This document shows, one piece after another, positions 292 through 48,025 of a stretch of DNA of 64,000 nucleotides (within the stretch, counting starts at the first letter, position 1; every line of letters starts with the position of its first letter). Where the stretch lies: positions 62,001 through 126,000 of the IMG/VR virus record IMGVR_UViG_3300029983_000007; one strand, given 5' to 3'. The notes under the pieces were generated by a model, which did no database searches, was not told the origin of the DNA, and saw nothing but the letters and a program-made list of their open reading frames with translations. Made by a program: the position numbers and the translations under genes.

Positions 292-322
292 CAAATTTAC
301 TAAAATTATTTGATAATACAAA
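292..322 (-). promoter_or_regulatory. Bacteroidota-type primary-sigma promoter
   Basis: TTTG-N19-TAAATTTG on minus strand. Confidence 0.65.
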
Positions 323-989
323 AATTTATTGTCAAATAATTATTATGAATTTTTTTTATCTCACACAATTTATCTTTTCTTTTGTATACAGGATTACACA
401 CTAGGCATATAAGACCGTGTTTTTTTGTATTCCACATCATCTGATAATCACCTTTTTGTTTGCATTTAGGACATGATTCGTTACTTTCTGAACCTATAAC
501 TTGATAATCTAATGAATAATAATCATTATCAAAAGAATAAAATTCAGAGTCTCCATCAAGTAAACTGTTTATGCTATACCATCCATCGTCATTATCGTTA
601 TATTTTTGTAGTATAATTTTAAGTTCTGATTTAGCATCTTCTGATAATTTAGTATTATATTTCCATAAATCCCAATCTTCATTATTACATGTTGAAATTA
701 AATAGCAATCTGCAACTTTTTTTATATAAGTATCATAATTGCAACTTTGAAATGTTATTGCCTGATTCTCATCTAAATTTTGTAAAAAATTTAGATATTT
801 ATCGTGCTCATTTTTTCGATATTCATCCTGTTTTTTATCTCCACCTCCATAATCTCCATAATCTCCATATTCATCATATTTTCTATTAATCATATATGTA
901 GCAAGTTCACGTACACTTTTAAAATTCTTATCTGATATTATAAAACTACTTGATGATGAATTACTAACAAATCCAGTTCTTATTTTCAT
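306..989 (-). CDS. NSSSSS-leader family protein with C-terminal Zn ribbon and RxxKL tail
   Basis: MKIRTGFVSNSSSSSF; CPKC...CLVC; KRKDKLCEI. Confidence 0.85.
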   Translation of the reverse strand: MKIRTGFVSNSSSSSFIISDKNFKSVRELATYMINRKYDEYGDYGDYGGGDKKQDEYRKNEHDKYLNFLQNLDENQAITFQSCNYDTYIKKVADCYLISTCNNEDWDLWKYNTKLSEDAKSELKIILQKYNDNDDGWYSINSLLDGDSEFYSFDNDYYSLDYQVIGSESNESCPKCKQKGDYQMMWNTKKHGLICLVCNPVYKRKDKLCEIKKIHNNYLTINFCIIK

Positions 990-1008
990 TTTCTATTATT
1001 TTCTATTA

Positions 1009-1311
1009 TTAACAATATGTCGTACCAGTTATCAATTCAACTTCACTAATATCAACATTTAATGTGTCTGCTACTAATTTAGATTTTTCTATTATATCTG
1101 ATATCGATGTTGCACTATCACTTAACTCTTCACTTCTTGATATTATATAACCAACAATATATTCGTAATTACTATTTTCAACATTAATTACTTCAATATT
1201 ATTGTCAAATCCTTGTTCAATTTCATCTGTAGTGCAATTTGCTCTTTTGATACCAATTACCACAAAGCTACTTGAACTTGAATTACTCACAAATCCTTTT
1301 CTTATTTTCAT
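1009..1311 (-). CDS. NSSSSS-leader family protein
   Basis: MKIRKGFVSNSSSSSF. Confidence 0.85.
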   Translation of the reverse strand: MKIRKGFVSNSSSSSFVVIGIKRANCTTDEIEQGFDNNIEVINVENSNYEYIVGYIISRSEELSDSATSISDIIEKSKLVADTLNVDISEVELITGTTYC

Positions 1312-1324
1312 ATTTTCTTATTTT

Positions 1325-1786
1325 TTATCCATTTCTACCTGCGCCAAAATAAACTTCTGATTTATTTAAGTCTAACCCTGATTTTTCACTATAAAAAGCA
1401 TTATAAACTTTTTTGTCATTATTCTCAAAGAATGACATATCAATATCATAATCAATATCATCATAATCAGATGTCATAAAATCTGAATCACCTTCATTAT
1501 TGCATATATTAACAACTAAAAATAAATCTTCATCTTTACAATCTTTAGTATCTAACGAAGCATTTGTTTGAAATGACTCTACATAAATTTTATTATTGTT
1601 AAAATGTATATCATAATTACCGCTTTCTTTAATATTAGATAACGTTAATACTTTAACATAATAATCCAATTTAATATTATTATCTTTTGTGTATTGTGTA
1701 AATTCGTTGTAATCATTAATCTTGGCTATACCAACAATAAAACTACTTGATGATGAATTACTTACGAAACCATTTCTTATTTTCAT
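1325..1786 (-). CDS. NSSSSS-leader family protein (start corrected to ATG 1786)
   Basis: MKIRNGFVSNSSSSSF begins at 1786; track extension overlaps the upstream gene. Confidence 0.85.
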   Translation of the reverse strand: MKIRNGFVSNSSSSSFIVGIAKINDYNEFTQYTKDNNIKLDYYVKVLTLSNIKESGNYDIHFNNNKIYVESFQTNASLDTKDCKDEDLFLVVNICNNEGDSDFMTSDYDDIDYDIDMSFFENNDKKVYNAFYSEKSGLDLNKSEVYFGAGRNG

Positions 1787-1799
1787 ATTCTTATTTTTT

Positions 1800-2390
1800 T
1801 TACAATAAATGTGGTCTTGCTTCAGCAATTCCAGCATTTGTTACTTGATACCATTTTGGATTGTATTCAGATAGATTGTTAGCTCCTCCATAAGATAATG
1901 CTGAACGAACTCCATAAATTAATCCTTCTATTACAAATCTTACTCCACCTTTGAATGGTATAGTTGTTGACTCTCCTTCTACATTTCTCTCAGCTTGACC
2001 ATGAACAGTTTTAGTTTCCAATGATGCAGAGCCTCTATAGCGTTTATATAAACCATTAGGACTCTCTATAACCTTACCTGGTGATTCTTCTGTTCCTGCT
2101 AATAGAGAACCTAACATGATTGTTGATGATCCTAATGCAAGAGCTTTAGAAATATCTCCACTTGATCTAATTCCACCATCAGCCATAACTGGTACTGTTG
2201 CTACATTTAAAATTTCTATTAAACTTGTCACATTTGGAACACCAAATCCTGTCTTAATCCTTGTTGTACAAAGAGAATTATGAACAACAATACCATTTAT
2301 ATTATACGAATGTGTTTTTTCTACTGTTAAATCATAAACTTTGCCTGTATAATTCTTTTTCTCAATGCTTTTTATTTCTACTAATTTCAT
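1800..2390 (-). CDS. Split intein C-half fused to C-terminal extein of GuaB/GuaC-family (IMPDH/GMP reductase) enzyme
   Basis: VYDLTVEKTHSYNINGIVVHN|SLCTTRIKTGFG; then ADGGI, KALALG, MLGSLLAGTEESPG, YRGSAS. Confidence 0.92.
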   Translation of the reverse strand: MKLVEIKSIEKKNYTGKVYDLTVEKTHSYNINGIVVHNSLCTTRIKTGFGVPNVTSLIEILNVATVPVMADGGIRSSGDISKALALGSSTIMLGSLLAGTEESPGKVIESPNGLYKRYRGSASLETKTVHGQAERNVEGESTTIPFKGGVRFVIEGLIYGVRSALSYGGANNLSEYNPKWYQVTNAGIAEARPHLL

Positions 2391-2512
2391 ATTATATCTT
2401 TTAATTTTTTAATAAAACTTCCATCATTTATCTCATTCTCCCAAATTCTAATTAATTTAAAATTGTGTTCTAATGCAAATTTATTTTTCTTTATATCTTT
2501 TTCAAATTTCAA
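2387..2512 (-). pseudogene. Internally deleted Vsr-like homing endonuclease relic between intein halves
   Basis: 41-aa frame LKFEKDIKKNKFALEHNFKLIRIWENEINDGSFIKKLKDII; overlaps IntN stop and IntC ATG. Confidence 0.7.
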
Positions 2513-3371
2513 CTAAAAAATATTTATCAGTTAAATTTCCTGCTGGTATCCATTCAGCATACTCTTCAATATTTGATGAGTTAACTAAACCTTTATATTT
2601 TATATTTACAACATAAAATTCATGATTTTTTGTGCATTCTATGCCATTTATAATAATAATTTCCTCATTTCTATCAAACTCTAATTTATTTAATACTTTA
2701 TTGAGTTCTCCATTATGACTATAAACTTCATCTCCAATTTTTACATCAATTATATCAATATATCCTTCTGAAGTTTTAACTTTCATGCTAGGTGTAAAAC
2801 AGCCTCCACCAATACCACATCTTAGTCCATCAGCTCCCCAATTTTGTAAATCAATAGCTGCTTCTGATGTAGCAATATTACCTGCAATTATATCCACTCC
2901 TAAATCTAATCCTTTAATTGCTTCGATTGCTTTTTTTACATTTATGTGATGACCATGTGCAACATCAATAAGAATAACATTTACTCCTGCTTCAATTAAT
3001 GATTTGGATCTTTCTAAAAAATCTCCGTTTGAACCTACTGCTGCCATTACTGGAATTTTGTGCCTTATTTTATCTTGATTGAAAGGATCATATGAACTAT
3101 TCTCAATACTTGTAATTAATTTTTTAATTTCATTTGCCTGTTCTTCAATAGACATAAATCTATGAATACATCCTACTCCTCCTAATTGAAACATTTTAAA
3201 TGCCATTTCATGTTCACAAACTGTGTCCATGGGTGATGCTACTAATGGTATCATCAACTCAAAATTTGTCGATAATTTTGTTCTTAAACTAATTTTATTT
3301 CTATGTTTAACTTCACTGTAAAATGGTATGAGTTGAATATCATCATACGTTAACGCTATGTTATTTGTCAT
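2502..3371 (-). CDS. N-terminal extein of GuaB/GuaC-family enzyme fused to split intein N-half
   Basis: LTYDDI, SPMDTV, GGVGCIHR, IDVAHGH, AGNIAT, GIGGG|CFTPSMKV...CTKNHEFYV. Confidence 0.92.
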   Translation of the reverse strand: MTNNIALTYDDIQLIPFYSEVKHRNKISLRTKLSTNFELMIPLVASPMDTVCEHEMAFKMFQLGGVGCIHRFMSIEEQANEIKKLITSIENSSYDPFNQDKIRHKIPVMAAVGSNGDFLERSKSLIEAGVNVILIDVAHGHHINVKKAIEAIKGLDLGVDIIAGNIATSEAAIDLQNWGADGLRCGIGGGCFTPSMKVKTSEGYIDIIDVKIGDEVYSHNGELNKVLNKLEFDRNEEIIIINGIECTKNHEFYVVNIKYKGLVNSSNIEEYAEWIPAGNLTDKYFLVEI

Positions 3372-5098: not shown

Positions 5099-5740
5099 TT
5101 AGTTTATTAATCTATCTATTCCGATAGCAAATCCAACTCCACCATCATATTCTCCTCCACCACAAATTTGTTTAGATGAACCTAATTTTTCGCAAGTTAT
5201 TTCAAATCCCTTACCATCTTTATAATAATCAAGTCCTCTTCTAACATCGTTATTGACAACATAATCATCAACATTAGTATTGAAATTGTTTGTTAATAAT
5301 TTCATTGCTAAATGTTGCAAGTTTGCTCCATCAGAAAGATAATCATGAGATGGATTTAAAATTTCAACTCCAAGTTGAGTGAATTGCCTATATCTTCCCG
5401 ACTGTGGTTTTTCCCCACGAAAGCATTCACAAACATAGAACAATAATACATCATTTTCATTTTTGTATGTTGTTTTAGATAGTTTTTGCGCTATTGCAGT
5501 ATATTCAGGAGCTAAACACAAATATCTATCTCCTCTATCTTTGAAATTGTACATCATGTTGTTATTTTCTTCTCCTACCTTATCTTTGAATAATTCTTGA
5601 AATTGTATAATAGGAATTTGTATTTCTTCAAAATGATATTCATCAATTAATATTTTAATCATTGAATTTATCAATTCTCTTTTTTCATTACCAACTAAAA
5701 TCCTAGTTCCTTTGTAACAAGTTTCTTTTATTATTTTCAT
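5099..5740 (-). CDS. Histidyl-tRNA synthetase-like catalytic core lacking anticodon-binding domain
   Basis: MYNFKDRG, LAPEYT, FRGEKPQSGRYRQFTQLGVE (motif 2), RGLDYY, GGGEY...GFAIGIDRL (motif 3); only 213 aa. Confidence 0.85.
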   Translation of the reverse strand: MKIIKETCYKGTRILVGNEKRELINSMIKILIDEYHFEEIQIPIIQFQELFKDKVGEENNNMMYNFKDRGDRYLCLAPEYTAIAQKLSKTTYKNENDVLLFYVCECFRGEKPQSGRYRQFTQLGVEILNPSHDYLSDGANLQHLAMKLLTNNFNTNVDDYVVNNDVRRGLDYYKDGKGFEITCEKLGSSKQICGGGEYDGGVGFAIGIDRLIN

Positions 5741-6624
5741 TTATCAATCTCACTCCATTCTTTAAGTAAATTACCATATTTCCAACATTGTACAAGTATT
5801 GATCTAGCTGCATAATACATTGACCCTGATATTCCTAAAAAATCCATTTCAAATGATGTTTTGCTCGCTACTTCTTTAAGTAAATCTAAATCAATTTCTT
5901 TGTTTTTTGATATTGCTTCTGACTGCATTAATTTAGCCCATCCTTCAGCATATTCAAATATACAATTACCATAAGAGTCAGTATTATTGGACTTCCAATC
6001 TTCCCAAGATTTTTCATCTAATAGTTCAATACTAATTCCTTTTATTTTTTCTTTATATTTTCTTTTTGTTTCAACTTCTTTTTTATGTTCTTCAATTCTT
6101 CTTTTTATTGATTCCTCTTCAGATTTTTTTAATTTTTTCTCATAATCATTTTTAGTTTTATCATCATATTCATCATCACATATCGGACCAATTTTAGTCC
6201 ATTTCATAAAATGAGCATCATTATAATACTTATGTAAATTATTGAGATTTGTGTTTTTGTCAATTAAACAAATGATACCATTAAAATCAAAGCTACAAAT
6301 TAAATTGTTTGCAATAGAAAACTTTTTTGCTTCTTTTGAAGTGTAATCAAAATCATATCCTAGCATAACTTGCATTCTCACTCCTGAAGTAGAATTACTA
6401 AGAATTTCTAAAATTTTTTCTTCTTCACTATTGATGATTAAGTTATTAAGAACTTTTAATTTCAATTTTCTATCAATATCATTATTAACACAGAATGTTA
6501 TATACTCTCCATATTCACATTCATAATAACTTGAAAAATTTATATTATTTGATATAAGATATTTAATTAAAATATAATTTTTATCTTTTTTATCTTTTAT
6601 TGTATATGTGAAATATTTATTCAT
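5737..6624 (-). CDS. hypothetical protein; N-domain related to 6912..7355
   Basis: Internal RKLKLKVL...EEKIL shared with neighbour. Confidence 0.7.
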   Translation of the reverse strand: MNKYFTYTIKDKKDKNYILIKYLISNNINFSSYYECEYGEYITFCVNNDIDRKLKLKVLNNLIINSEEEKILEILSNSTSGVRMQVMLGYDFDYTSKEAKKFSIANNLICSFDFNGIICLIDKNTNLNNLHKYYNDAHFMKWTKIGPICDDEYDDKTKNDYEKKLKKSEEESIKRRIEEHKKEVETKRKYKEKIKGISIELLDEKSWEDWKSNNTDSYGNCIFEYAEGWAKLMQSEAISKNKEIDLDLLKEVASKTSFEMDFLGISGSMYYAARSILVQCWKYGNLLKEWSEIDK

Positions 6625-6911: not shown

Positions 6912-7355
6912 TCATTTACGATAGATTCTGTTGTTGTTATATTGTTTTGTCTTTTGACTATACATTTTAGATTGCATCTTATTTGTTATAACTTTACAAT
7001 TCATGTCCATTTCTTTTTTGTATAAATTATCATCAATATTTGTATACCAAAAATAAGAGTCAGGATAATGAAAATCTTTAGTGCTATCAACAATTATAGA
7101 TTTTTCAATAAAACTTAAAATTAATTCTTCTTTACTATTGTGTTTTGTGTTATTAGTTACACTTAATAATTTTAACTTCCTGTATAATTTCTTATCAATA
7201 CTAAAATTTACAATATGTTCATATGAGCTTTTTATGTTCAATCCAGTATAATTCATTTTTATAAACTTACAAATTTCAATATTGTAAAATTTAAGAACTG
7301 CACCATGTTTGCTTGACATATCAAATGTGAATAATATTAAATTATTATCTATCAT
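6912..7355 (-). CDS. hypothetical protein
   Basis: Internal RKLKLLSV...EELIL. Confidence 0.6.
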   Translation of the reverse strand: MIDNNLILFTFDMSSKHGAVLKFYNIEICKFIKMNYTGLNIKSSYEHIVNFSIDKKLYRKLKLLSVTNNTKHNSKEELILSFIEKSIIVDSTKDFHYPDSYFWYTNIDDNLYKKEMDMNCKVITNKMQSKMYSQKTKQYNNNRIYRK

Positions 7356-7654
7356 TTTTCTAAATCTTTTTTAGAAATATATTCAATAACGTCTTTTGAT
7401 TTTTTAATTTCAGAAATAACCAATGAATATAATGAATCTTTAATTATTATTTTGTCATCATTTGAAGAACTTTCTAATATTGCTAATAGATTACTCATAG
7501 GACTTAATTTATTTCTAACATTAGCAAGTTCTTCAATTTGATATTTTTCAATCTCTTTAAGAAGGTCTTGCTTATCATTCCAACTTGATGCTGGTTGTTG
7601 CTCGGAATCAAATTTCCAAAAACTATTTACTAAATTTAAAATTTTGCTTTTCAT
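7352..7654 (-). CDS. hypothetical protein
   Basis: 4-nt overlaps on both sides. Confidence 0.6.
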   Translation of the reverse strand: MKSKILNLVNSFWKFDSEQQPASSWNDKQDLLKEIEKYQIEELANVRNKLSPMSNLLAILESSSNDDKIIIKDSLYSLVISEIKKSKDVIEYISKKDLEK

Positions 7655-7902
7655 AACATTTTCAATTTTTCCAATTTTTCTAATCTTAATATTTTAATTT
7701 TGTAAGTTTTCATTTTATTCAAGAATAAATCTTCATTAGTGAAATCACCTAAGAAAATATCATATCCACCGTAATATAATTTATAATTAGTAAAATATCT
7801 CATTTCTACTTCACGTACCATAAATTTGTGAGTATAACCATACCAAGTACGATCTTCAATATCATATCTAAAATTATTTAATATTAGGGTAGCTTCTGTC
7901 AT
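7651..7902 (-). CDS. RxxKL-tail small protein
   Basis: ends ILRLEKLEKLKML. Confidence 0.65.
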   Translation of the reverse strand: MTEATLILNNFRYDIEDRTWYGYTHKFMVREVEMRYFTNYKLYYGGYDIFLGDFTNEDLFLNKMKTYKIKILRLEKLEKLKML

Positions 7903-9951: not shown

Positions 9952-11031
9952 TTAAATTTTATATAGAGGACAATCACGATTACAACGAATAAGGTTATTT
10001 CTAAAATTAATAGTCTTTTCGTTATTCCAAATATCATCAATAAAATTACCACATTTTAAAACATTTAGTCCTTCTTTCCAATTTTCTGTATTTGGAGTAA
10101 ATGAGCAAGGAAAATAATTTCCTTTGACATCAATATAGCTACTATAACAACTTGACTCACATGGCTCTACACATTGCTTCATTTTGTTTCTGTATTCATC
10201 TGATAATGAGTTATCTGATTCCAAATATTTTAGAAATTTGTGACTACTGCAACTATCAAATCCTATACTTATTTTTTCATCTAATGCAAATTTGCAAAGT
10301 TCATTAAACTTATCCTGTGGTAAAGGGTGAAATCTATTTTCTGCTCTACCTTTAGTTTTTAAACTTAGTAAAACTAATGCGTTAAGATTTTTTAATCTTT
10401 CATCATTTTTACAATCTTTAATTACTTGCATTGTATAGTCAAAATTTTCCAAGCAAATCATATCGTGAATGTTTACTTGTGTCATTCCTCTATCAGTTAA
10501 TTCTTTTATTGCGTTGTAACTATTGTCTTTATTATAAGATGTACCAACTGATACAGCAACTGCTCCCATTGTTTTTGATAATCTATCATACAATTCTGAT
10601 GTCATTCGTGATCCATTTATTGTTACATTAGGAACAACATCTTGAGAGCGAGTATAATCAAAAATATCCCACATATCTGGATTTGAATCAATGTCTGTTA
10701 TTCCAAATGCTACCTGAGTTACAGTTAAAGGAAGCTTAGAAAAAATGTTTTTATATGTGTCTAATGACATATATTCACCATCTTTATTGTTGCTCTTGTA
10801 GCAAAATGAACAGTTTTGTTTACACGCTGTGTCAATTTCAATATCAGCAATTTCAGGTAATCCTATTTCTAAATCACCATCATCATCTTCTGTTTTACCC
10901 CATCTGGCAAAAAACCCTGTTTTTTTGTTAAATAAGAAATTGTAGTTTTCTGATTTTAAAATTTTAACATCTTTATTATCTACAATTAGTGCTTCTTCAC
11001 CGTTTGAAAGTTTTAATTTAGTTTGTTTCAT
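9952..11031 (-). CDS. Radical SAM enzyme with SPASM/twitch-like C-terminal domain
   Basis: CKQNCSFC (CX3CX2C); C-terminal CES...YIDVKGNYFPCSF...CNRDCP. Confidence 0.9.
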   Translation of the reverse strand: MKQTKLKLSNGEEALIVDNKDVKILKSENYNFLFNKKTGFFARWGKTEDDDGDLEIGLPEIADIEIDTACKQNCSFCYKSNNKDGEYMSLDTYKNIFSKLPLTVTQVAFGITDIDSNPDMWDIFDYTRSQDVVPNVTINGSRMTSELYDRLSKTMGAVAVSVGTSYNKDNSYNAIKELTDRGMTQVNIHDMICLENFDYTMQVIKDCKNDERLKNLNALVLLSLKTKGRAENRFHPLPQDKFNELCKFALDEKISIGFDSCSSHKFLKYLESDNSLSDEYRNKMKQCVEPCESSCYSSYIDVKGNYFPCSFTPNTENWKEGLNVLKCGNFIDDIWNNEKTINFRNNLIRCNRDCPLYKI

Positions 11032-11285
11032 ATTTTGTTTAATTTGTTTAATTTGTCTCTTCTTTCAGATTTTAATGATGATTCAAATAATTCAATATAA
11101 TATAATGTATAGGGTTGTTCTGATATTCCTATACGCAAAATGTCTTTGTTAATAGATGAATATTGTAGTCCATCTACAGTGTAATTTTTATCAAAACTCA
11201 AATCTGATGGTATTCCAATTTGCTCAAATATGTTTGTTGGTTTTTTGAGTATAACTTTATCACCAATTTTCAAGTTTGTTATCAT
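11028..11285 (-). CDS. KIGD-type small protein with RxxKL tail
   Basis: LKIGDKVILK ... ERRDKLNKLNKI. Confidence 0.7.
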   Translation of the reverse strand: MITNLKIGDKVILKKPTNIFEQIGIPSDLSFDKNYTVDGLQYSSINKDILRIGISEQPYTLYYIELFESSLKSERRDKLNKLNKI

Positions 11286-14690: not shown

Positions 14691-14846
14691 TTATAGATTA
14701 TTTAATCTATTTAACTTTTCAGTTCTATCATTTTTTAATTTCTTTCTTTCTTCTTCTCTATCAAATATCATTTTAAATGTATAGTTATAAAATGCAGGAT
14801 TTGCTACTAAGTCGTAGCTGAAAAGTTTACTTGATTTTATTTCCAA
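14691..14846 (-). CDS. Small protein: prohead-protease-like peptide fused to RxxKL tail
   Basis: Manual translation LEIKSSKLFSYDLVANPAFYNYTFKMIFDREEERKKLKNDRTEKLNRLNNL (TTG start). Confidence 0.55.
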   Translation of the reverse strand: MEIKSSKLFSYDLVANPAFYNYTFKMIFDREEERKKLKNDRTEKLNRLNNL

Positions 14847-15138
14847 TTTGCTTCAATTTCTTTTTTCTTAGATGCTTAACATATTCATTAGGAAAGTTAT
14901 CATAGTCCAATACAGGCTTGTTTGAAGCTTCCTTTATGACATCTAATTGCCATTGTATTGACTCAACTGGATCATCACATTCACTTTCATAAGATATTAT
15001 AGTAATTGGATTTTCAGTACAAGCTTCAGGTAAGTCCGTTTCATCGTTATAATATACTTCATAAATACTAAAATGAACATCAGAGTATAAATCTGTTGTT
15101 ATTCTTTTTGCTAAAATTCTATAATTCCAATGTGTCAT
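14827..15138 (-). CDS. hypothetical protein with RxxKL tail
   Basis: WNYRI...IYEVYY; ends HLRKKKLKQI. Confidence 0.7.
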   Translation of the reverse strand: MTHWNYRILAKRITTDLYSDVHFSIYEVYYNDETDLPEACTENPITIISYESECDDPVESIQWQLDVIKEASNKPVLDYDNFPNEYVKHLRKKKLKQIGNKIK

Positions 15139-15429: not shown

Positions 15430-15723
15430 TTATTGAATTGAATTTAATTTGTTTAATTTATTTTTTCTTGATAAATTTTTGATAGCATTATCAATTAGGT
15501 TATCTGTAATTTCTTTTTTATAATATCTGAAATTATAAGAAGACTTCATTATTTCTAATTGATGTTCATTTGCATTCATTAATTTATTTAAAATACCCTC
15601 TTCTAATTCTTTATAGAATAGCATTTGACCTACCACTTGAATATCCTTATATTTTAATGTGAGTTCTGAAATTAATTCTAAGTTATCACAACTTTTTTTT
15701 AATTGTTCAATTAATTCCTCCAT
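15430..15723 (-). CDS. RxxKL-tail small protein
   Basis: ends LSRKNKLNKLNSIQ. Confidence 0.65.
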   Translation of the reverse strand: MEELIEQLKKSCDNLELISELTLKYKDIQVVGQMLFYKELEEGILNKLMNANEHQLEIMKSSYNFRYYKKEITDNLIDNAIKNLSRKNKLNKLNSIQ

Positions 15724-20410: not shown

Positions 20411-20648
20411 TATTGAGGCTTTCTAATTTTAACATTCTTTCTTCTTTTTCACTGTAAAAATAATCATAAAAATAAAAATAGTAAGTTGTATATTTAAATA
20501 TACAGAAAATTTCATCAAACTCTATTCCATCCACTATCAAACGTAATATAACATCACTGTTGCTACACCAAGTTGTGTAATAACTATGCCCTTTTTCAAA
20601 TCTATATATTGACTTCTTACAAAGATACTTTGTACCTATTTTCAACAT
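20400..20648 (-). CDS. KIG-type RxxKL-tail protein
   Basis: MLKIGTKYLCKKSIY...FYSEKEERMLKLESL. Confidence 0.65.
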   Translation of the reverse strand: MLKIGTKYLCKKSIYRFEKGHSYYTTWCSNSDVILRLIVDGIEFDEIFCIFKYTTYYFYFYDYFYSEKEERMLKLESLNNVG

Positions 20649-28383: not shown

Positions 28384-28550
28384 TTTAAGTTATTTATTTT
28401 TTCTATCTTTTTCTTTCTTTCTATTTTTGTTATTTTTCTTTTTAGTTCAGCAGCTAATTTTTCATCTATATCAAAAGATTCTGGATATAAACTTGCATAA
28501 TCAAAATTAGATATACTATATAAATCTTCAAATTTCAGATTCTTCTTCAC
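28380..28550 (-). CDS. Small protein: PolB motif-A-like peptide fused to RxxKI tail
   Basis: Manual translation (GTG) MKKNLKFEDLYSISNFDYASLYPESFDIDEKLAAELKRKITKIERKKKIEKINNLK; ATGA-coupled to next gene. Confidence 0.6.
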   Translation of the reverse strand: MKKNLKFEDLYSISNFDYASLYPESFDIDEKLAAELKRKITKIERKKKIEKINNLK

Positions 28551-30152: not shown

Positions 30153-30410
30153 ATGAAATATCATGTCGGTGATAACGTTGTGTTCATAAATAATTCCAAA
30201 AATGCTTACGATTGGAACATAACTGAGTATAAAATCTATAAAATTTATGGATATTCAATTCATAAATCTCAAATTGTATATTCTGTCAAATTTGGAACAA
30301 CTATTCAAAGTTGGTACAGTGAATGTGACTTCATGTCATTAAAAGAATATAGAAAATTGAAAATAGAAAAAATAAATAAACTAAAAAATGGGTATATTGG
30401 AGATAGATAG
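30153..30410 (+). CDS. VGD-type RxxKI-tail protein
   Basis: YHVGDNVVFI...FMSLKEYRKLKIEKI. Confidence 0.65.
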   Translation: MKYHVGDNVVFINNSKNAYDWNITEYKIYKIYGYSIHKSQIVYSVKFGTTIQSWYSECDFMSLKEYRKLKIEKINKLKNGYIGDR

Positions 30411-30623
30411 TGAATATATACAGAAAGAAGAATTGACTACATTAGGATTAGTTTGTCACTGAGTAAAGACAGTCAATAATAAATTTTATTATCACATTAT
30501 GAATATTGGTGATAGTAAAAAAATAGACATTTATGTTACACAGCAAGAACTTAATAATATTGAAGAATATATGAAAAATTATTATAAAGAAATTAGATTA
30601 AAAAATTAAAAAAATTAAAATGA
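30388..30623 (+). pseudogene. Disrupted RxxKL-tail gene
   Basis: MGILEID...VCH*VKT... in-frame TGA, plus a missing A in the IRLKKLKKLK tail. Confidence 0.5.
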
Positions 30624-30937
30624 AAAAAATTAAAAAAATAATAATTTTTTTAAATAAGTCATTTAATCCATATTATGAATTAAATAAACAGGCAAAAACA
30701 ATTGAAAATATATATGAAAAACTTATATCAAGTCAATTAGATAGTAGACTGAATGAACTTGAAAGACTTAGAAATATGAGTGAAGAAGATATAAAAAATG
30801 AGAAAGAAAAAATCTTAAATATAGAGGCAACTAAAATATTAACTCAGTTAGAATGTAATCCAGAATTATATAGAGTATTTAATAATATATTAAGAATAAA
30901 TAAATTTAAAAAAATAGAAGATAGTAAAAATGAGTAA
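30620..30937 (+). CDS. RxxK-tail protein
   Basis: ends ILRINKFKKIEDSKNE. Confidence 0.6.
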   Translation: MKKIKKIIIFLNKSFNPYYELNKQAKTIENIYEKLISSQLDSRLNELERLRNMSEEDIKNEKEKILNIEATKILTQLECNPELYRVFNNILRINKFKKIEDSKNE

Positions 30938-31514
30938 TTTAATAGAACATGCAAAAAAAGAATTTATAGCATTAGGATATAAACCAGTTGATGAATGTGA
31001 AGAAGGACCAAATAGATGGGTACAAGAAAATGTATTGGAATTACTTGAGATGTTTTCTAAACAAGGACATTCAGGATTTTCAGCAAAAATTGTTATTGAC
31101 TATTTTAAAAAATTAGCAAATTTTAAACCAATTGCGCCAATTATGTGTACTGATGATGAATGGATCGATGTTTCTATATATAATAATGATGTGACTTATC
31201 AAAATACTCGTTGTTCTGCTGTTTTTAAAAATTCAATAAATGACTCACCATATTATTTGGATGCAATAGTTTTTGTTGAAGATGGAAATTCATCTTATAC
31301 TGGAGGTGCTTTTAATAAGAAGCATGAACGTATCACAAGTAGTCAAGAAATAAAAATTCCGTTTATTCCAAAATCTTTTTATGTCGATGTTGTAGATATT
31401 GATGGAGAACATCACATTAAAGATGAATCTCAATTAAAGGAAATTTGGGAATATTATGAGCATCAAGAAACAAAATCATTTATTAGATTACAAAAATTAA
31501 AAGCATTAAAATGA
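30930..31514 (+). CDS. phage protein with RxxKL tail
   Basis: QGHSGFSA motif; ends FIRLQKLKALK. Confidence 0.7.
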   Translation: MSNLIEHAKKEFIALGYKPVDECEEGPNRWVQENVLELLEMFSKQGHSGFSAKIVIDYFKKLANFKPIAPIMCTDDEWIDVSIYNNDVTYQNTRCSAVFKNSINDSPYYLDAIVFVEDGNSSYTGGAFNKKHERITSSQEIKIPFIPKSFYVDVVDIDGEHHIKDESQLKEIWEYYEHQETKSFIRLQKLKALK

Positions 31515-31729
31515 AAATAACAATAGATGAATCACAATTTGATGTCAAATGGGATTTTGGAGATTTACCAGATAATCCCAGTAAAAGTTTGACTATTGAT
31601 ATGTTAAATAGGTGGCAAGAATTTATAAATTATGACAAAATAAATGAAGCAAGAAAAGAAGCAAGAAAATTAAGAATTGATAAATTAAATGAAATAATTT
31701 CAAAATCAAATGACAATACAGAATTATAA
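31511..31729 (+). CDS. RxxKL-tail protein
   Basis: KLRIDKLNEI. Confidence 0.6.
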   Translation: MKITIDESQFDVKWDFGDLPDNPSKSLTIDMLNRWQEFINYDKINEARKEARKLRIDKLNEIISKSNDNTEL

Positions 31730-34900: not shown

Positions 34901-35848
34901 TTACAAGTTAAATTTGGTTATATCTTCATAAAATGGATTTTCCTTTATAAAATCAGCAAATCTCTCATAAAAAAGTTCTCCATTATTCTTTTTTAACATA
35001 TTATAAAATTTAGGATATGCACCCAATCTCAATAATTTTGTTGATATGTCAATACCTCCTAATCCAGATTCATAATATAATCTATTGTATATTAAAATAA
35101 CAAAATCATCATACATATATTTTTTAAGTGGAGTCATAAAATCATCTATTATATTAAAATTTTTCTCAATCATTGGTAACATATTTGAAAATGTTTTCAT
35201 ATCTTGAATTATCACACCATTATCAAATAGAGTTTTAAATATATTTATTACTATATTTTTACTTTTATCACTATAATGTCTTAGTTGATAAGTCAAAGGA
35301 TATAAATAACTTACTTGGTCCTTACCATTTAAATTTACATTGTTTTTTATTAATAATTCTAATATTTTTTTATTTAATATGGATCCTGTGAGAACTGATT
35401 GAGAATTGATATCTATTTTATTTATATCTACTCCATCGTTAATTATTTTTTGATATAACTCAACATTGAACAACTTCTTTATTGCTAATGTAATTAGTGT
35501 TGTTCTATTAATTTTGGTTACTTGATTAATATTAGCTCCTAAATCATACAATTTTTTGAATACTTTAAGACTCTTGCAAAAAAATAACACATTCTCGCCT
35601 GTAGATTTTACTACTTGATTTAAGTCAACTTTAAATTTTAAAATATAATCAATCAAATCTTCATTATTAGATGAAACTACACTCATTAATACGTTTTTAC
35701 CACTTTTATCACTATAATTAACTAATCTATTAATTAATGCTGAGTTTTTGTTGTCTTCTGTTTCTAATGATTTTAATATTTCAATTATATCTTCATTAGA
35801 CATTGATATGTTTTCATTTAATAGAAACATGTTATATTTTTTTATCAT
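34901..35848 (-). CDS. Ankyrin-repeat protein with CTS-like N-terminus and KFNL end
   Basis: GKNVLM, GENVLF, GANIN, GVDIN repeats; MIKKYNMFLLNE...ITKFNL. Confidence 0.75.
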   Translation of the reverse strand: MIKKYNMFLLNENISMSNEDIIEILKSLETEDNKNSALINRLVNYSDKSGKNVLMSVVSSNNEDLIDYILKFKVDLNQVVKSTGENVLFFCKSLKVFKKLYDLGANINQVTKINRTTLITLAIKKLFNVELYQKIINDGVDINKIDINSQSVLTGSILNKKILELLIKNNVNLNGKDQVSYLYPLTYQLRHYSDKSKNIVINIFKTLFDNGVIIQDMKTFSNMLPMIEKNFNIIDDFMTPLKKYMYDDFVILIYNRLYYESGLGGIDISTKLLRLGAYPKFYNMLKKNNGELFYERFADFIKENPFYEDITKFNL

Positions 35849-35849
35849 A

Positions 35850-36236
35850 TTATATATTGAATTTATTTGAGTTTTTATAAAATTCTAAGTTTTCTGGATG
35901 TTCTAAAAAAGAAACATTGTTATATCCTATAATTATTCCATAATCGTCTATTAATAATCCACAATTTTTTGCATATTTCTCAGCCTCAATATCATCTTTA
36001 ATTAAAATTGAGTCATCATCTTTTTGTATTTGCCAATAATCTCCATATTTATTTGTATATGGTACATTATATTCATTTGGAATATTCAATCCTGATGCAT
36101 GTGAAATAAGCCAACCTTCTTTTTTCATTATATCATCATAAAGATTACAAAACCATTCAATGAAGGGCTGAAATAAATCTATTGGATATATTTTCTTATT
36201 ATCTTTAATATTTTCATATTTTTTGATATATTTCAT
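35850..36236 (-). CDS. Putative internal head protein
   Basis: MKYIKKYE...YKNSNKFNI; late promoter at 36257-36283. Confidence 0.65.
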   Translation of the reverse strand: MKYIKKYENIKDNKKIYPIDLFQPFIEWFCNLYDDIMKKEGWLISHASGLNIPNEYNVPYTNKYGDYWQIQKDDDSILIKDDIEAEKYAKNCGLLIDDYGIIIGYNNVSFLEHPENLEFYKNSNKFNI

Positions 36237-36284
36237 TTATAACATATATTTATTTATATATATTAAAAAATTAAAGTTATTTTT

Positions 36285-36911
36285 ATGAGCAAAAGTGAAA
36301 CACCAACAGAGAAAGATTATAGAGAATCATTTCAATCAAATATAGACAAATTAAAAACTGAAATTGAAGATGCACAAGAAGAATTGGATTTTGATCCATC
36401 AGAATTTTTTCCAGTTAATAATAACATAGATTTAAATTTCAAAATTGAAATGCATGATTATGAAAAAGATTTGGAAGTAATAAGAGAAGAATCTAAAGAA
36501 ACACTTGAATGCATAGCAAATTTATATTTATCAGAAGATATTATGTTAAATAAAAATATAAATAACATAATAAAAAATGATGCACTTGCAATTTCTGATT
36601 TAAAATTTTCAATTTCATGTTCAAAAAGAGGATTAATAAATCTGATGAAGCAAATAGATAATGGCAGTTCAGACGCTGATTTATTTCAGGCTGTTTCTAT
36701 GTTTCAAAGAGAAATGAAAGATTGTATTGAAACTTTATATAAATTACAAAAAAGTATGAAAGAATTTTTTAAAGATTTAAAAGAAGAATTAAAGGAAATA
36801 AACATAGGTGATAGTGAAGTAGAAATACACGATAAGTATAAAGATATGAGAATTTCAGATAGAGATATTAACAAATCAATTGATATTATATTAGCATCTA
36901 AAAAGAAATAA
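36285..36911 (+). CDS. hypothetical helical protein
   Basis: 208 aa ORF. Confidence 0.7.
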   Translation: MSKSETPTEKDYRESFQSNIDKLKTEIEDAQEELDFDPSEFFPVNNNIDLNFKIEMHDYEKDLEVIREESKETLECIANLYLSEDIMLNKNINNIIKNDALAISDLKFSISCSKRGLINLMKQIDNGSSDADLFQAVSMFQREMKDCIETLYKLQKSMKEFFKDLKEELKEINIGDSEVEIHDKYKDMRISDRDINKSIDIILASKKK

Positions 36912-36943
36912 AAAAATCAGTAGATATTCTACTGATTTTTTTT
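36910..36943. terminator. Bidirectional terminator
   Basis: AAAAAAATCAGTAGA-TAT-TCTACTGATTTTTTT. Confidence 0.8.
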
Positions 36944-37213
36944 AAATGTTTCTGATTTAATTTTTTCTATTGCTACTATCACTATGCTAACGTACACTTT
37001 CTTTTTTTCATCTAAAAGTTCACACATATGCTTTGTACTATCAGACAATCCTTTTAATTTATCATATTCTTCATCAGTTAAATAAACAGTTTTATTATTA
37101 TTTCTTCTTGTTGAATATTCCTGAGTTTTAGTTAACTCTCCATTTTCACTCAACTCATAAGGATTTCTAAATTTATCCTTATCAACTTCTTCATTAAATT
37201 TTTCTATTTTCAT
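36929..37213 (-). CDS. Putative internal head protein, paralog of 37228..37512
   Basis: MKIEKFNEE; NGEL...LTDEEY. Confidence 0.65.
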   Translation of the reverse strand: MKIEKFNEEVDKDKFRNPYELSENGELTKTQEYSTRRNNNKTVYLTDEEYDKLKGLSDSTKHMCELLDEKKKVYVSIVIVAIEKIKSETFKKNQ

Positions 37214-37227
37214 ATTACTTTTTATTT

Positions 37228-37512
37228 TTATAAATTAAATTTATTAGTTGTTCTCATAAATTCAGAGTCATCTTTAACTTTTGATATTGCAGTTCTTAGT
37301 CTTAATATCTGTGTTTCTTTCATTGCATTATAATTCTCACAAGATTTTTTTATATTATCAGCTAAATCTTTTATTCTACTATACTCATCATCAGTTAAGA
37401 AAATATTAGAACTCATGGTGTTGCCAAGTTTCAATTCTCCATTTTTAGGTTCAATAAAATATCCTTTTTCTCTTGAACTTTCGTTTATTTCTTCAAATTT
37501 ATTCACCTTCAT
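37228..37512 (-). CDS. Putative internal head protein
   Basis: MKVNKFEEINE...TNKFNL. Confidence 0.65.
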   Translation of the reverse strand: MKVNKFEEINESSREKGYFIEPKNGELKLGNTMSSNIFLTDDEYSRIKDLADNIKKSCENYNAMKETQILRLRTAISKVKDDSEFMRTTNKFNL

Positions 37513-37513
37513 A

Positions 37514-37855
37514 TTATATGTTAAATTTTTTTGAATTTTTATACACCTCAGGATTGTCTACAAATTTCATTATATCATCAAATTCACTTTGATTTATAAT
37601 ATCACAATATTTTTTTTTAGAACTAGATTCTATAATAATCATAACAGAATAAAAATATCCGTTATTTTCAAAATCTTTCTCAATAGTCTTTTCTATACTA
37701 ATTGCTTTAACTTTTTTAAGTCCATATCCATAATGATTTATTCTAAATTGATCATTGAAATTATAATAATCACTTATGAGATTCATAATATCTAACCTTA
37801 TTCTTTCACACTCATGGTTTAATTTTAAATATTCATCATATTTATTTACCTTCAT
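37514..37855 (-). CDS. Putative internal head protein (start corrected), paralog of 37857..38186
   Basis: MKVNKYDEYL...NPEVYKNSKKFNI. Confidence 0.7.
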   Translation of the reverse strand: MKVNKYDEYLKLNHECERIRLDIMNLISDYYNFNDQFRINHYGYGLKKVKAISIEKTIEKDFENNGYFYSVMIIIESSSKKKYCDIINQSEFDDIMKFVDNPEVYKNSKKFNI

Positions 37856-37856
37856 A

Positions 37857-38186
37857 TTATATGTTAAATTTTTTTGAGTTTTTATATACATCAGGATTTT
37901 CTATAAATTTAATCATATCATCATATTCACTTTGAGTTAACTTATCATAATTTCTACCTCCTGGTACATAATATTCTATCCAATAAAAATATTCTCCTGA
38001 ATCATAATCTATTTCATCAGACTTACTAACATTTAAGACAATTTTAATATTATTATCTCCAATATGAGTTATTCTGAAATCATCATTCAAATTATAATAA
38101 TCTTGAATTAGACTCATAATATTACTTCTTTCGATATCGTATTTATCTTTCAACTTTAAAAATTGTTCATATCTAGTTACTTTCAT
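37857..38186 (-). CDS. Putative internal head protein
   Basis: MKVTRYEQFL...NPDVYKNSKKFNI. Confidence 0.7.
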   Translation of the reverse strand: MKVTRYEQFLKLKDKYDIERSNIMSLIQDYYNLNDDFRITHIGDNNIKIVLNVSKSDEIDYDSGEYFYWIEYYVPGGRNYDKLTQSEYDDMIKFIENPDVYKNSKKFNI

Positions 38187-45501: not shown

Positions 45502-45511
45502 TTTGATATTT

Positions 45512-46592: not shown

Positions 46593-46603
46593 TTTTCTTA
46601 TAA

Positions 46604-46846
46604 TTAATTTACTTCACTAAGAGTTTTGAGTTTTTGTTTACGAATCATTTTTTTTACAAATAAATGATAATCATATAGTTTTATTGATATTTTAATATTT
46701 CTATATTTTGCCAATTCCATATCAAAATACTTTACTGTGTAGCAAGCTACTTCATCAGAGTAAGAGTGTATTTTTATATCTTCTATTGTATTTTCCCCTA
46801 ATGCATTTATAGATAATAAATAACTCTTTACTGTTGGATTTTTCAT
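46604..46846 (-). CDS. RxxKL-tail protein
   Basis: ends MIRKQKLKTLSEVN. Confidence 0.65.
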   Translation of the reverse strand: MKNPTVKSYLLSINALGENTIEDIKIHSYSDEVACYTVKYFDMELAKYRNIKISIKLYDYHLFVKKMIRKQKLKTLSEVN

Positions 46847-47259
46847 GGTTTTAGTTTACCTATTGTTTCAATTTTTATATTAATTAATGATACTAATCTA
46901 TTTATTTCTTGTGAATGTATACCTCCCTGTGACATAGTCCACATTTTTTTTATTTCTACATCAAACAAATCTTTCAATTCTTTAACTGTATCAGTATCAT
47001 TTATCAAAGATTCAACTTTATCACGATAATCAAAAAATACATCACTTTTTCTACTTATATTAAATGAAAATGTTATTAAAATTGAAAACATAAATGACAA
47101 ACCAACAGAGAATTTCAACATAACATTATGAATCCTAATATCATCATTAGGAATAACATAATAGAATAATAGATAACAAAAACTAACAAAAAATACAAAT
47201 GATAACACAAAAACAATCCATAAAGAACATGTATCAAAATACTTACTTAATGTTTTCAT
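46843..47259 (-). CDS. two-TM membrane protein (start MKTLSK)
   Basis: two hydrophobic helices. Confidence 0.55.
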   Translation of the reverse strand: MKTLSKYFDTCSLWIVFVLSFVFFVSFCYLLFYYVIPNDDIRIHNVMLKFSVGLSFMFSILITFSFNISRKSDVFFDYRDKVESLINDTDTVKELKDLFDVEIKKMWTMSQGGIHSQEINRLVSLINIKIETIGKLKP

Positions 47260-47317
47260 AATTTTTATTTTTATAAGTGTAAATAATAAAGAATTGACCA
47301 CAATAAAATTGATATTT

Positions 47318-47650
47318 TCATAATCCTATGCTTATAAATAACATTATACAATTACTTTTAAAAATGCTAGAAAAAATACAATATGCATTTAAAAATTCAG
47401 CAAATTCAGATGTGATTTCCCTATATTTTATGTCAGCATCTTTTTGAGATATTTTTTTATCAAGTAATTTATTTTTTATATCAATCATTCTGATAGCAAG
47501 GCTAAATACTTTTTTAACCAATTTATCTGAAAAAACTCCAACAAATTCAAAAGTTTCCATTAATTTATTGAATGCTTTATAATTATCAATATTATTCTCG
47601 TTTATCCAAGAATTTTCTAAGTCATATCCATATTCTGATTTCATGCTCAT
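47318..47650 (-). CDS. hypothetical protein (start MSMKSE)
   Basis: TATCTTTG at 47678-47685 upstream. Confidence 0.55.
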   Translation of the reverse strand: MSMKSEYGYDLENSWINENNIDNYKAFNKLMETFEFVGVFSDKLVKKVFSLAIRMIDIKNKLLDKKISQKDADIKYREITSEFAEFLNAYCIFSSIFKSNCIMLFISIGL

Positions 47651-47734
47651 TTTATTTAGTTTTTTATAATTATTGTACAAAGATAATAAAAAAATGAGCT
47701 ATAATAATCTATAGCTCATTTTATTTTTAATGAT

Positions 47735-48025
47735 TTAATGTTTTTTGTGTTTATAATATAATTTTTTACTATATTTTTCTTCTTGTTTTTTTCTTTCTTC
47801 TAATTTTTTATTAATTTCATTATAAGTGTTATTGGATAATTTTTCCAAGTATTTCAACTTTTTCTTTCTATCTTCTTTTTTCCTTACTTGTGATTCGTAT
47901 TTTTCTATTATTTTAGCAGTAATAGAATCAATAATTACATAATTACCAGATCCGTTCAAATTTTTCTGGTGAATAATATTCGCAGCATTTAGTATTTTTT
48001 GATATAGTTCACTGTTTTTTGACAT
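47735..48025 (-). CDS. Small protein: major-capsid-like segment fused to RxxKL tail
   Basis: LYQKILNAANIIHQKNLNGSGNYVIIDSITAKII then EDRKKKLKYLEKL. Confidence 0.6.
   Translation of the reverse strand: MSKNSELYQKILNAANIIHQKNLNGSGNYVIIDSITAKIIEKYESQVRKKEDRKKKLKYLEKLSNNTYNEINKKLEERKKQEEKYSKKLYYKHKKH

Follow-up and report, generated by a model that had tools for sequence, protein, structure and literature searches.

A predicted helical tag shared by the C-termini of unrelated small proteins in a clade of huge phages

Why should some twenty small and for the most part unrelated proteins of one phage genome end in nearly the same few residues? The question is raised by a stretch of 64,000 nucleotides (the window; positions 62,001 to 126,000 of the IMG/VR record IMGVR_UViG_3300029983_000007) from a very AT-rich (25% GC) huge phage. 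A reading of its sequence alone had proposed that about two dozen accessory proteins share an R-x-x-K-L/I-x-x-L/I tail, and that this tail is a portable basic amphipathic helix (a docking, localisation or degron signal) tying diverse early proteins to one hub. We asked whether the tail is more than a by-product of composition, how it has spread, and what it might do.

The observation itself is confirmed and lies far beyond chance. A six-frame scan of the window for R..K[LI]..[LI] gave 29 matches, and about 21 of them lie 1-16 residues before the stop of a real ORF. Of 115 called genes, 20 carry the motif in their last 25 residues, whereas shuffling the last 35 residues of each protein gives a mean of 0.41 (maximum 4 in 2000 shuffles). 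The rate in the tails is 81 times the internal rate (20 tail hits against 2 internal hits). Furthermore, a profile trained on 85 tails from other contigs only finds 19 window proteins scoring >=8 bits, all with the motif ending 0-14 residues from the C-terminus, whereas shuffled proteomes give 0.07 such hits. The tail is found mainly on small proteins: 18 of 60 genes of <=120 aa carry it, against 2 of 55 longer ones. The individual features are as follows (scores in bits are those of the profile).

7651-7902, minus strand: 83-aa ORF ending in the tail; core RLEKLEKL at 7663-7686 (11.0 bits, ends at the C-terminus).
11028-11285, minus strand: 85-aa ORF; core RRDKLNKL at 11040-11063 (16.1 bits).
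14691-14846, minus strand: 51-aa ORF; core RTEKLNRL at 14703-14726 (9.9 bits).
14827-15138, minus strand: 103-aa ORF with a phrog_21321 head; core RKKKLKQI at 14845-14868 (12.4 bits); in this family the tail is an appended module.
15430-15723, minus strand: 97-aa ORF; core RKNKLNKL at 15445-15468 (13.0 bits).
20108-20410, minus strand: 100-aa ORF, second gene downstream of dnaK; core RKVKLKQI at 20159-20182, 16 aa before the stop (15.3 bits).
20400-20648, minus strand: 82-aa ORF next downstream of dnaK (about 220 nt away), paralogue of 20108; core RMLKLESL at 20415-20438 (15.8 bits).
20868-22742, minus strand: phage DnaK (Hsp70), without a tail, listed because tailed genes flank it on both sides.
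22761-22994, minus strand: 77-aa SH3-like ORF directly upstream of dnaK; variant core RKLQLIKI (Q instead of K) at 22773-22796 (4.6 bits, but a clear family member, FISLKEYRKLQL).
26210-26467, minus strand: 85-aa SH3-like ORF; core RMNKINKI at 26246-26269 (14.5 bits).
26451-26789, minus strand: 112-aa SH3-like ORF; core RTLKLNKI at 26469-26492 (19.3 bits).
26777-27017, minus strand: frameshifted SH3-like paralogue (pseudogene) that starts MFKVGDSVTF and ends, in another frame, with the tail (YYRKMKLEKLNKICTK); core RKMKLEKL at 26798-26821.
27005-27274, minus strand: 89-aa SH3-like ORF; core RKMKLEKL at 27026-27049 (14.6 bits).
27256-27543, minus strand: 95-aa ORF; core RKIKLNKL at 27274-27297 (12.5 bits).
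27528-27866, minus strand: 112-aa ORF; core RKQKLVKL at 27543-27566 (11.5 bits).
28380-28550, minus strand: 56-aa ORF; core RKKKIEKI at 28395-28418 (13.1 bits).
28528-29187, minus strand: 219-aa ORF; core RKIKLNKI at 28558-28581 (9.4 bits); orthologues in the related loci L003, L006 and L009 keep R, K, L and L/I while the other positions vary.
30153-30410, plus strand: 85-aa SH3-like ORF; core RKLKIEKI at 30351-30374 (20.8 bits).
30620-30937, plus strand: 105-aa ORF; variant core RINKFKKI (F instead of L) at 30893-30916 (9.0 bits).
30930-31514, plus strand: 194-aa protein of the Tad3 family (Thoeris inhibitor) with an appended linker and tail; core RLQKLKAL at 31485-31508 (8.8 bits).
31511-31729, plus strand: 72-aa ORF; core RIDKLNEI at 31673-31696 (8.4 bits).
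46604-46846, minus strand: 80-aa ORF; core RKQKLKTL at 46619-46642 (9.8 bits), written with CGT, CTC and CTT codons rather than the usual AGA and TTA.
306-989, minus strand: 227-aa ORF, a borderline case; RKDKLCEI at 357-380, 16 aa before the stop (3.8 bits only).
6448-6471, minus strand: weak internal copy (RKLKLKVL, residue 52; 5.6 bits) in the 295-aa ORF 5737-6624, whose residues 201-292 are a Tad4 domain; not a C-terminal tail.
7167-7196, minus strand: weak internal copy (YRKLKLLSV, about residue 58; 5.4 bits) in ORF 6912-7355; not a C-terminal tail.

Most of the proteins named in the sequence-only reading are therefore confirmed, ORF 22761 by family membership. However, the match in the ORF at 47735 is not C-terminal (36 aa from the end, 3.9 bits), and a second proposed pseudogene, at 30388, could not be confirmed, as only EIRLKN followed by a stop is present there. 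The claimed absence of the tail from DnaK, RtcB, PhoH, DHFR, the glycosyltransferase and the structural genes is confirmed, with no tails among the 13 genes beyond 48.1 kb.

Is the motif a property of the protein or of the DNA? Selection acts on the protein. Codons at the L, I, R and K positions vary and match genome-wide usage, and within families 24% of pairwise differences at key positions are synonymous. The distance from the motif to its own stop codon has an sd of 12 nt, against 184 nt for the distance to the start of the next gene. In related contigs the motif persists over 21-47% GC, the highest value being that of the related locus L038.

The 20 proteins fall into 15 BLAST families, the related loci hold about 99 tailed families, and in related huge phages the add-on tail is carried by more than a hundred protein families. 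The heads are, however, not all unrelated, as had been proposed: five proteins and the pseudogene belong to one SH3-like family, and two more proteins form a pair. Two natural experiments show that the tail, of roughly 20 residues, was appended. In the Tad3-like family, 71 of the 72 closest homologues carry ...YYEHQETPSY[IL]R.xKL..[IL], whereas the more distant ones end at ...YYxx, where the body ends. The same holds for the family of ORF 14827. Furthermore, SH3-like heads occur without the helix in tandem-repeat proteins. AlphaFold2 puts the motif in a terminal helix after a short loop in two unrelated proteins, the Tad3-like protein (residues 182-193, pLDDT about 94) and F178, a tailed protein of the related loci (residues 153-166).

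The tail is conserved across a clade of huge phages that encode DnaK. The clade of the window is dense in tails, whereas distant members use a variant, R[DE]xK[IL]xx[IL][LIF], which is carried by the related locus L020 and one large clade. The published 642-kb genome LR756502 has it, with 11/76, 5/69 and 3/63 tailed genes in three 50-kb pieces. The tail is absent from control phages, AT-rich ones among them, and from the 735-kb genome LR756501; LR756501 and several DnaK subclades have DnaK but no tails nearby.

We consider the tail to be a portable, self-contained C-terminal alpha-helix of about 16 residues, predicted from structure models, that has been grafted onto many unrelated small accessory proteins (probability about 0.6 for this reading, including docking to a common partner). 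Its typical form in this clade is F-x-[ST]-[LI]-K-E-[YLI]-R-K-x-K-[LI]-x-K-[LI]-N; it begins with an S/T-x-x-E capping box and ends 0-14 residues (up to 16 in ORF 20108) before the stop. On the helix, the invariant Arg (position 0), the invariant Lys (+3) and the aliphatic residues at +4 and +7 (and +8 in distant relatives) lie on one face. R and K are never exchanged for each other, while the neighbouring positions vary freely, which speaks for specific recognition. In this view, the face would dock into a groove with acidic pockets on one common partner protein, so that dozens of different heads would be tied to the same machine, and the tail would represent a hitherto undescribed address or docking tag. 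The enrichment, the constraint at the protein level, the portability, the prediction of a helix and the conservation across a clade rest on the present analysis, whereas binding to one shared partner is inferred from the pattern of conservation, and no such partner was found. The interpretation offered by the sequence-only reading is thus supported only in part. The portable helix on mostly unrelated heads is borne out. However, "basic" holds only for this clade, as distant relatives have D or E at +1 and a near-neutral tail, and "amphipathic" is not supported, as the Eisenberg hydrophobic moment is 0.27 against a background of 0.28, the invariant R and K lying on the same face as the two aliphatic residues. 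That the carriers are early proteins, and that the tail acts through a hub, as a localisation signal or as a degron, likewise remains inference.

Which machine could this be? The only lead is the phage-encoded Hsp70 system, and our best single guess, with a probability of only about 0.2-0.25, is a component of it (DnaK, DnaJ or GrpE), the tail serving as a recruitment handle for clients or co-factors; the next guess is a protease or adaptor, which would make the tail a degron. In about 25 loci the gene order is GrpE, F178, F104 (a further tailed protein) where present, and DnaJ, and in several of them the tailed F60 follows DnaJ. In LR756502 a tailed 65-aa gene follows GrpE and DnaJ, and in the window tailed genes flank dnaK, although adjacency to any particular gene is only weak evidence when 5-45% of small genes carry the tail. 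Moreover, the substrate-binding residues of DnaK are canonical and identical in tail-rich and tail-free clades, DnaK also occurs without tails nearby (see above), and F178 was not found on the contig of the window and has no known fold. The motif, with only two or three aliphatic residues separated by polar ones and an acidic residue in the distant variant, fits poorly to the classical DnaK client motif, a contiguous hydrophobic core of 4-5 residues with basic flanks in which acidic residues are disfavoured. It should also be noted that the largest family, SH3-like plus tail, has 2400 representative clusters; the helix may have begun there as a structural element and only later been co-opted.

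Other explanations appear less likely. The tail could be a degron or timer recognised by a host or phage protease or its adaptor, so that a whole class of accessory proteins is cleared together or host proteins bound by the heads are dragged to the protease. Its position near the C-terminus, like that of the ssrA and MuA-type ClpX signals, its occurrence on small accessory proteins (one of them a relative of a Thoeris inhibitor) and its absence from enzymes and structural proteins would fit. However, its distance to the carboxyl end varies, the last residues are not conserved, a stable capped helix rather than a disordered tag is predicted, no protease gene was seen in the window, and conserved operon members such as F178 and F159 (another tailed protein) carry it, which is odd for proteins meant to be short-lived. 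We regard self-association as equally unlikely. Here the carriers would dimerise, oligomerise or pair with one another without a separate hub, which would raise avidity as in many anti-defence proteins. Tad3 indeed acts as a homodimer (PMC13728456), the motif presents one aliphatic stripe, and E at -2 or -1, or D/E at +1, could pair with R or K of a second helix. But the helix spans only about two heptads, the spacing of its hydrophobic residues (-4, -1, +4, +7) breaks the heptad pattern around the invariant R and K, an Arg in the middle of the stripe is unusual for a homotypic zipper, and Tad3 homologues without the tail exist, including the crystallised one.

Still more doubtful is a virion-loading signal that would direct proteins into the capsid for injection with the DNA. 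Huge phages package many proteins, the T4 protein IPI* is a precedent for an injected anti-defence protein, a Tad3-like inhibitor carries the tail, and tails occur across the whole genome of LR756502. However, up to 45% of the genes in some loci carry the tail, which seems too many for cargo, and tailed genes sit in chaperone and nucleotide-metabolism operons rather than in structural modules, with none in the structural part of the window. Common descent alone, with the tail simply the best-conserved last helix of one family and no shared partner, is improbable as well. It could draw on the tandem SH3-like paralogues of the window, on the size of that family (115 of its 120 small members are tailed) and on the rapid divergence of small phage proteins, owing to which BLAST can miss real kinship. 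Yet the Tad3-like protein has a solved-structure relative that ends without the tail, its more distant homologues and those of ORF 14827 stop at the end of the body, SH3-like repeats exist without the helix, and the carriers range from 44 to 319 aa and include all-helical (F178) and beta-barrel heads, different folds having been seen for three heads in structure predictions. Finally, an artefact of composition or at the level of the DNA, with K/N/I/L-rich ends arising from A-rich sequence upstream of the next gene or from a promoter, ribosome-binding or recombination site, could be suspected from the low GC content and the tight packing of the genes (median distance from the motif to the next start, 34 nt). 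In our view it is refuted by the shuffles, the codon usage, the link of the motif to its own stop, its retention at 47% GC and its absence from AT-rich controls.

Among known systems, helical short linear motifs of the LxxLL or BH3 type (eukaryotic docking helices) are comparable: a short helix with few fixed positions, in which hydrophobic residues at i, i+3 and i+4 plus flanking charges form one face, occurs on unrelated proteins and binds one groove. The tail has four fixed positions in 8 residues, is over-represented against a composition-matched null and is gained and lost independently of the domain, and the distant variant K[IL]xx[IL][LIF] literally contains an LxxLL-like core. Those motifs, however, are eukaryotic, usually internal and located in disordered regions, whereas the phage motif is always near the C-terminus and has an invariant Arg and Lys, its docking being inferred. 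Encapsulin cargo-loading peptides and the T4 capsid targeting sequence are likewise short portable terminal tags sending unrelated proteins to one destination, but there is no sequence resemblance, the T4 signal is N-terminal and cleaved, and the context here is accessory and chaperone operons, not head genes. The C-terminal ClpX signals (ssrA LAA, MuA-type RRKKAI) and the ClpX-binding tail of SspB are basic or hydrophobic peptides near the C-terminus that recruit one machine; they depend on the extreme C-terminus and are unstructured, whereas the tail sits at a variable distance from the end and is predicted to be helical. Specialised Hsp70 client motifs (LPPVK of IscU for HscA; EEVD for TPR co-chaperones) provide a precedent for a defined short motif that ties proteins to an Hsp70 machine, and tailed genes here lie inside a grpE–dnaJ operon and flank dnaK, although the tail is helical by prediction and poor in hydrophobic residues, the DnaK binding cleft is canonical and the co-occurrence with DnaK is imperfect. 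No conserved Gln or aromatic residue, as in sliding-clamp binding motifs (QL[SD]LF or PIP box), is present in the logo. The membrane-targeting amphipathic helices of MinD and FtsA share the C-terminal position, the basic plus aliphatic residues and a length of 10-15 residues, but the hydrophobic moment of the tail is no higher than background, its R and K are not interchangeable, and the distant variant is near neutral and carries an acidic residue. As for the heads, the body of ORF 30930-31514 is a member of the Tad3 family of type I Thoeris inhibitors (PF25185), with a Pfam match of E 3.3e-34 (117.7 bits against a cut-off of 27) and a Foldseek match to PDB 9b7d, the ThsB-Tad3 complex (chains B and D, E 6e-16, TM about 0.7). 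Binding and inhibition of ThsB are known only for the characterised Tad3 (PMC13728456) and are inferred here by analogy; what distinguishes the window protein and its closest relatives from more distant Tad3 homologues is the linker and tail added after the conserved ...YYE end.

The 64-kb window, which is part of the 330-kb IMG/VR contig IMGVR_UViG_3300029983_000007, has a GC content of 25% throughout. Exact copies of two of its proteins, the products of ORFs 30930 and 30153, are recorded on 11-12 contigs, the longest of 711,471 bp (the samples include several JGI metagenomes and an ENA assembly), and the phage genome may therefore be much larger than 330 kb. DNA searches revealed no close relative among annotated phages. 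The nearest DnaK sequences in that collection (53-57% identity) belong to the 634-735 kb uncultured "huge phage" genomes LR756501-4 and LR745206. Besides PhoH, DHFR and a collagen-like tail fibre, the window encodes the following features:

1800-3371, an IMPDH-like gene in two ORFs; the product of the downstream ORF (1800-2390) also hits Pfam Intein_splicing
5099-5740, a 213-aa ORF hitting the HisRS-type class II tRNA-synthetase families (tRNA-synt_His, tRNA-synt_2b), much shorter than a full synthetase
5737-6624, a 295-aa protein whose last 90 residues (201-292) are a Tad4 (Thoeris inhibitor) domain
20868-22742, DnaK
23656-26144, RtcB split into two ORFs (23656-24531 and 25590-26144) by a LAGLIDADG-type ORF (24543-25328)
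30930-31514, a protein with a Tad3 (Thoeris inhibitor) domain
34901-38186, minus strand, five neighbouring ORFs (34901, 35850, 37228, 37514, 37857) with different heads, one of them an ankyrin-repeat protein of 315 aa, sharing a different C-terminal ending, NP(E/D)xYKNSxKFN(I/L), and possibly representing a second portable tail in the same phage
48442-50952, a family B DNA polymerase ORF of only 493 aa next to a homing-endonuclease-like ORF (DUF7487, 48442-49431)
56720-57451, a GIY-YIG endonuclease ORF

The sequence-only reading had reported that about two dozen small proteins of this window end in a common R-x-x-K-(L/I)-x-x-(L/I) tail, and this observation proved to be real. A six-frame scan for R..K[LI]..[LI] gave 29 matches, about 21 of which lie 1-16 residues before the stop of a plausible gene. 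Of 115 genes called as a greedy non-overlapping ORF set, 20 have the motif in their last 25 residues. Shuffled sequence and internal positions had been named beforehand as the comparisons that could refute the motif: shuffling of the last 35 residues of each protein gave a mean of 0.41 genes (maximum 4 in 2000), and the rate per position is 81 times the internal rate. In order not to judge the motif with the regular expression that defined it, we trained a profile on 85 tails from other contigs and scanned the window proteome with it. Nineteen proteins score 8 bits or more, all ending 0-14 residues from the C-terminus, whereas shuffled proteomes give 0.07 such hits.

Not every member of the original list was confirmed. 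ORF 22761 is a clear family member with Q in place of K, ORF 306 is borderline, and the copy in ORF 47735 is weak and lies 36 residues from the end. The internal copies in ORFs 5737-6624 and 6912-7355 exist, but are weak. In both proteins the first 60 residues end in this copy, which may be a relic of a fused small tailed gene. The pseudogene at 26777-27017 is a frameshifted paralogue that keeps the tail, whereas the pseudogene suggested at 30388 is not convincing. ORF 3391 matches the regular expression (RYLKLLLL) but not the profile and is probably a chance hit. Another hit, a class II aminoacyl-tRNA-synthetase-like protein in locus L054, is a false positive, as its ending is part of the enzyme's own motif 3. 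Tails are concentrated in small genes (18 of 60 genes of 120 aa or less, against 2 of 55 longer ones). No tail lies beyond 48.1 kb, and 11 of the 17 genes between 26.2 and 31.7 kb carry one.

The constraint is on the protein rather than on the DNA. At the conserved aliphatic positions the codons TTA, TTG, CTT, CTC, CTA, ATA and ATT are used in roughly the genome-wide proportions, and Arg is encoded by AGA in 20 of 22 cases, against 79% genome-wide. The distance from the motif to its own stop has an sd of 12 nt, while that to the next start has an sd of 184 nt. Within families, 24% of pairwise comparisons at the four key positions differ synonymously (note that this test is partly circular for non-synonymous changes, because the regular expression defines the set). 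Furthermore, the motif survives in relatives with 21-47% GC and is absent from AT-rich controls.

In the window's clade the sequence logo reads F(-7), S/T(-5), L/I(-4), K(-3), E(-2), L/I/Y(-1), R(0), K(+1), x, K(+3), L/I(+4), x, K(+6), I/L(+7), N(+8). The S/T-x-x-E element resembles a helix capping box. AlphaFold2 places the motif in a terminal helix after a short loop in two unrelated proteins, namely the Tad3-like protein (predicted helix 182-193, mean pLDDT 94) and F178 (predicted helix 153-166), a protein of about 175 aa encoded between grpE and dnaJ in distant huge phages. On a helical wheel R0, K3, L4 and L7 fall on one face, and as a result the classical hydrophobic moment is no higher than background (0.27 against 0.28). 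R and K are never exchanged for each other. In the tails of ORFs 26210, 27005, 27256, 27528 and 28528 a cysteine recurs 1-6 residues after the motif (KLNKICSK, KLCQTI, KINCSEE), and many metagenomic SH3-like relatives (P0187-P0301 in our homologue numbering) end in KICSKLEIK or ICLNQEIK.

The 20 carriers in the window were grouped by BLAST into 15 families, including one SH3-like family with five members and a pseudogene, and one pair. Two families provide clean natural experiments. Among 120 homologues of the Tad3-like protein, 71 of the 72 closest continue after the conserved EVWKYYE with a Pro/Ser/Thr-containing linker and the tail, whereas the more distant ones stop at the end of the body. 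The model of this protein matches the crystal structure of Tad3 bound to ThsB (PDB 9b7d, E 6e-16). Likewise, 31 of 35 homologues of ORF 14827 carry the tail after DYDNFPNEY. Three of the most distant end right there, and a fourth has a degenerate basic ending that matches the looser regular expression only by chance. The SH3-like family is very large (2400 clusters at 50% identity), and 115 of the 120 small members inspected carry the tail. Large proteins of up to 2865 aa with 37 matched stretches (P0160, P0161, P0164, P0169, P0189) are built from tandem copies of the same SH3-like barrel that heads this largest tailed family, and such tandem-repeat proteins lack the helix between units.

To assess the distribution of the tail, 10 kb on each side of 80 phage DnaK genes were examined. 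The tail is dense in the window's clade (up to 24 of 53 genes) and in one further locus, L020. In one large clade it is present at 5-20% of genes in the variant form K(-4)...R-[DE]-x-K-[IL]-x-x-[IL]-[LIF], usually 2-3 residues from the end, and it is absent from several subclades. About 99 BLAST families in these loci have tailed members. The published 642-kb genome LR756502 has 11/76, 5/69 and 3/63 tailed genes in three separate 50-kb pieces, against 0.14-0.27 in shuffles. In contrast, no tails were found in 127 kb of the 735-kb LR756501, in 50 kb of cyanophage P-SSM2 or in a 42-kb AT-rich control. An expected similarity to an LGI ending of T4-like cyanophage proteins was thus not borne out in the P-SSM2 sequence. 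Among the 45 longer carriers scanned against Pfam, almost none has a known domain.

A fixed Arg and Lys embedded in a narrow aliphatic stripe, free variation elsewhere and a position near but not at the end look like a docking helix for a specific groove, and we take this as the best explanation (probability about 0.6). While the enrichment, the protein-level constraint, the portability and the conservation across a clade are shown by the sequence data, and the helix is predicted by structural models, docking to one common, as yet unidentified partner is our inference, as would be any inhibition of Thoeris by the Tad3-like protein. The sequence-only reading, which proposed a portable basic amphipathic helix acting as a docking, localisation or degron signal that ties diverse early proteins to one hub, is thus partly supported: portability and helix are upheld, whereas amphipathicity is not supported and the distant variant is near neutral. 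The near-neutral variant and the ordinary hydrophobic moment argue against membrane or nucleic-acid binding, and the pattern also argues against a carboxyl-terminal degron of the ssrA type. A degron, self-association, capsid loading and pure common descent remain as rival explanations. A likeness to J-domain helix II and to the eukaryotic D-box (RxxLxxxxN) was considered by eye and rejected as superficial, since the register of the invariant K and L does not fit.

The only contextual lead to a partner is the chaperone system. In about 25 distant loci (among L011, L019, L021, L023-L045 and L056-L073, e.g., L056:3199-5815) the gene order of a conserved operon is GrpE, F178 (tail variant), a 104-aa protein F104 (tail) where present, and DnaJ. 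In several of them a 60-aa protein F60 (tail) follows. F178 has a confident all-helical model, but no fold match in the PDB (best E 3.7), and a pattern scan requiring exact peptide words, a weak test for this purpose, did not find it on the window's contig. In LR756502, GrpE and DnaJ are adjacent and followed by a tailed 65-aa gene. In the window, dnaK has a tailed gene directly upstream, and the next two genes downstream are tailed. However, no signs of a specialised DnaK binding cleft were found, the substrate-binding residues being canonical and identical in tail-rich and tail-free clades. Some DnaK phages lack tails, and with so many tailed genes adjacency is weak evidence. Tailed genes also sit in a block of NusG, a deaminase and a 4HBT thioesterase. 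Within the docking reading, the Hsp70 system as the partner is therefore the best single guess, but only a tentative and rather unlikely one.

A more far-reaching possibility, which we regard as unlikely although it is compatible with the data, is that the tail is a proteome-wide address tag specific to one lineage of huge phages. It would couple a hundred or more fast-evolving accessory protein families, anti-defence proteins among them, to the phage's own Hsp70 machine or to a proteolytic adaptor. The phage could then fold, hold, deliver or destroy a whole class of proteins, and perhaps the host proteins they bind, through one interface.

If the partner is the phage-encoded Hsp70 system, that would explain why huge phages carry their own DnaK, DnaJ and GrpE. 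Phage accessory genes are mostly small ORFans, and nothing links them to one another. The shared tail marks a functional class, which in this window comprises 30% of the genes of 120 aa or less and includes a Tad3-family protein, provides a peptide handle for fishing out the inferred common partner experimentally or by co-folding, and gives a simple sequence signature for recognising this class in metagenomes.

Short docking motifs shared across a viral proteome are well known in eukaryotic viruses, but we found no description of one in phages in Pfam, PHROGs or the searched literature. Searches of the tailed proteins against Pfam and PHROGs matched only Tad3 and phrog_21321, with no family model covering the tail, and literature searches for a shared C-terminal motif in phage proteins and for huge-phage chaperones gave nothing relevant. 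Where the sequence-level defining features of membrane-targeting helices, ssrA/MuA degrons, clamp-binding motifs and classical DnaK client motifs could be tested, the tail did not show them. Functionally, the closest kinds are helical short linear motifs and portable terminal targeting peptides, and we therefore classify the tail as an apparently undescribed form of a putative portable terminal docking or address peptide.
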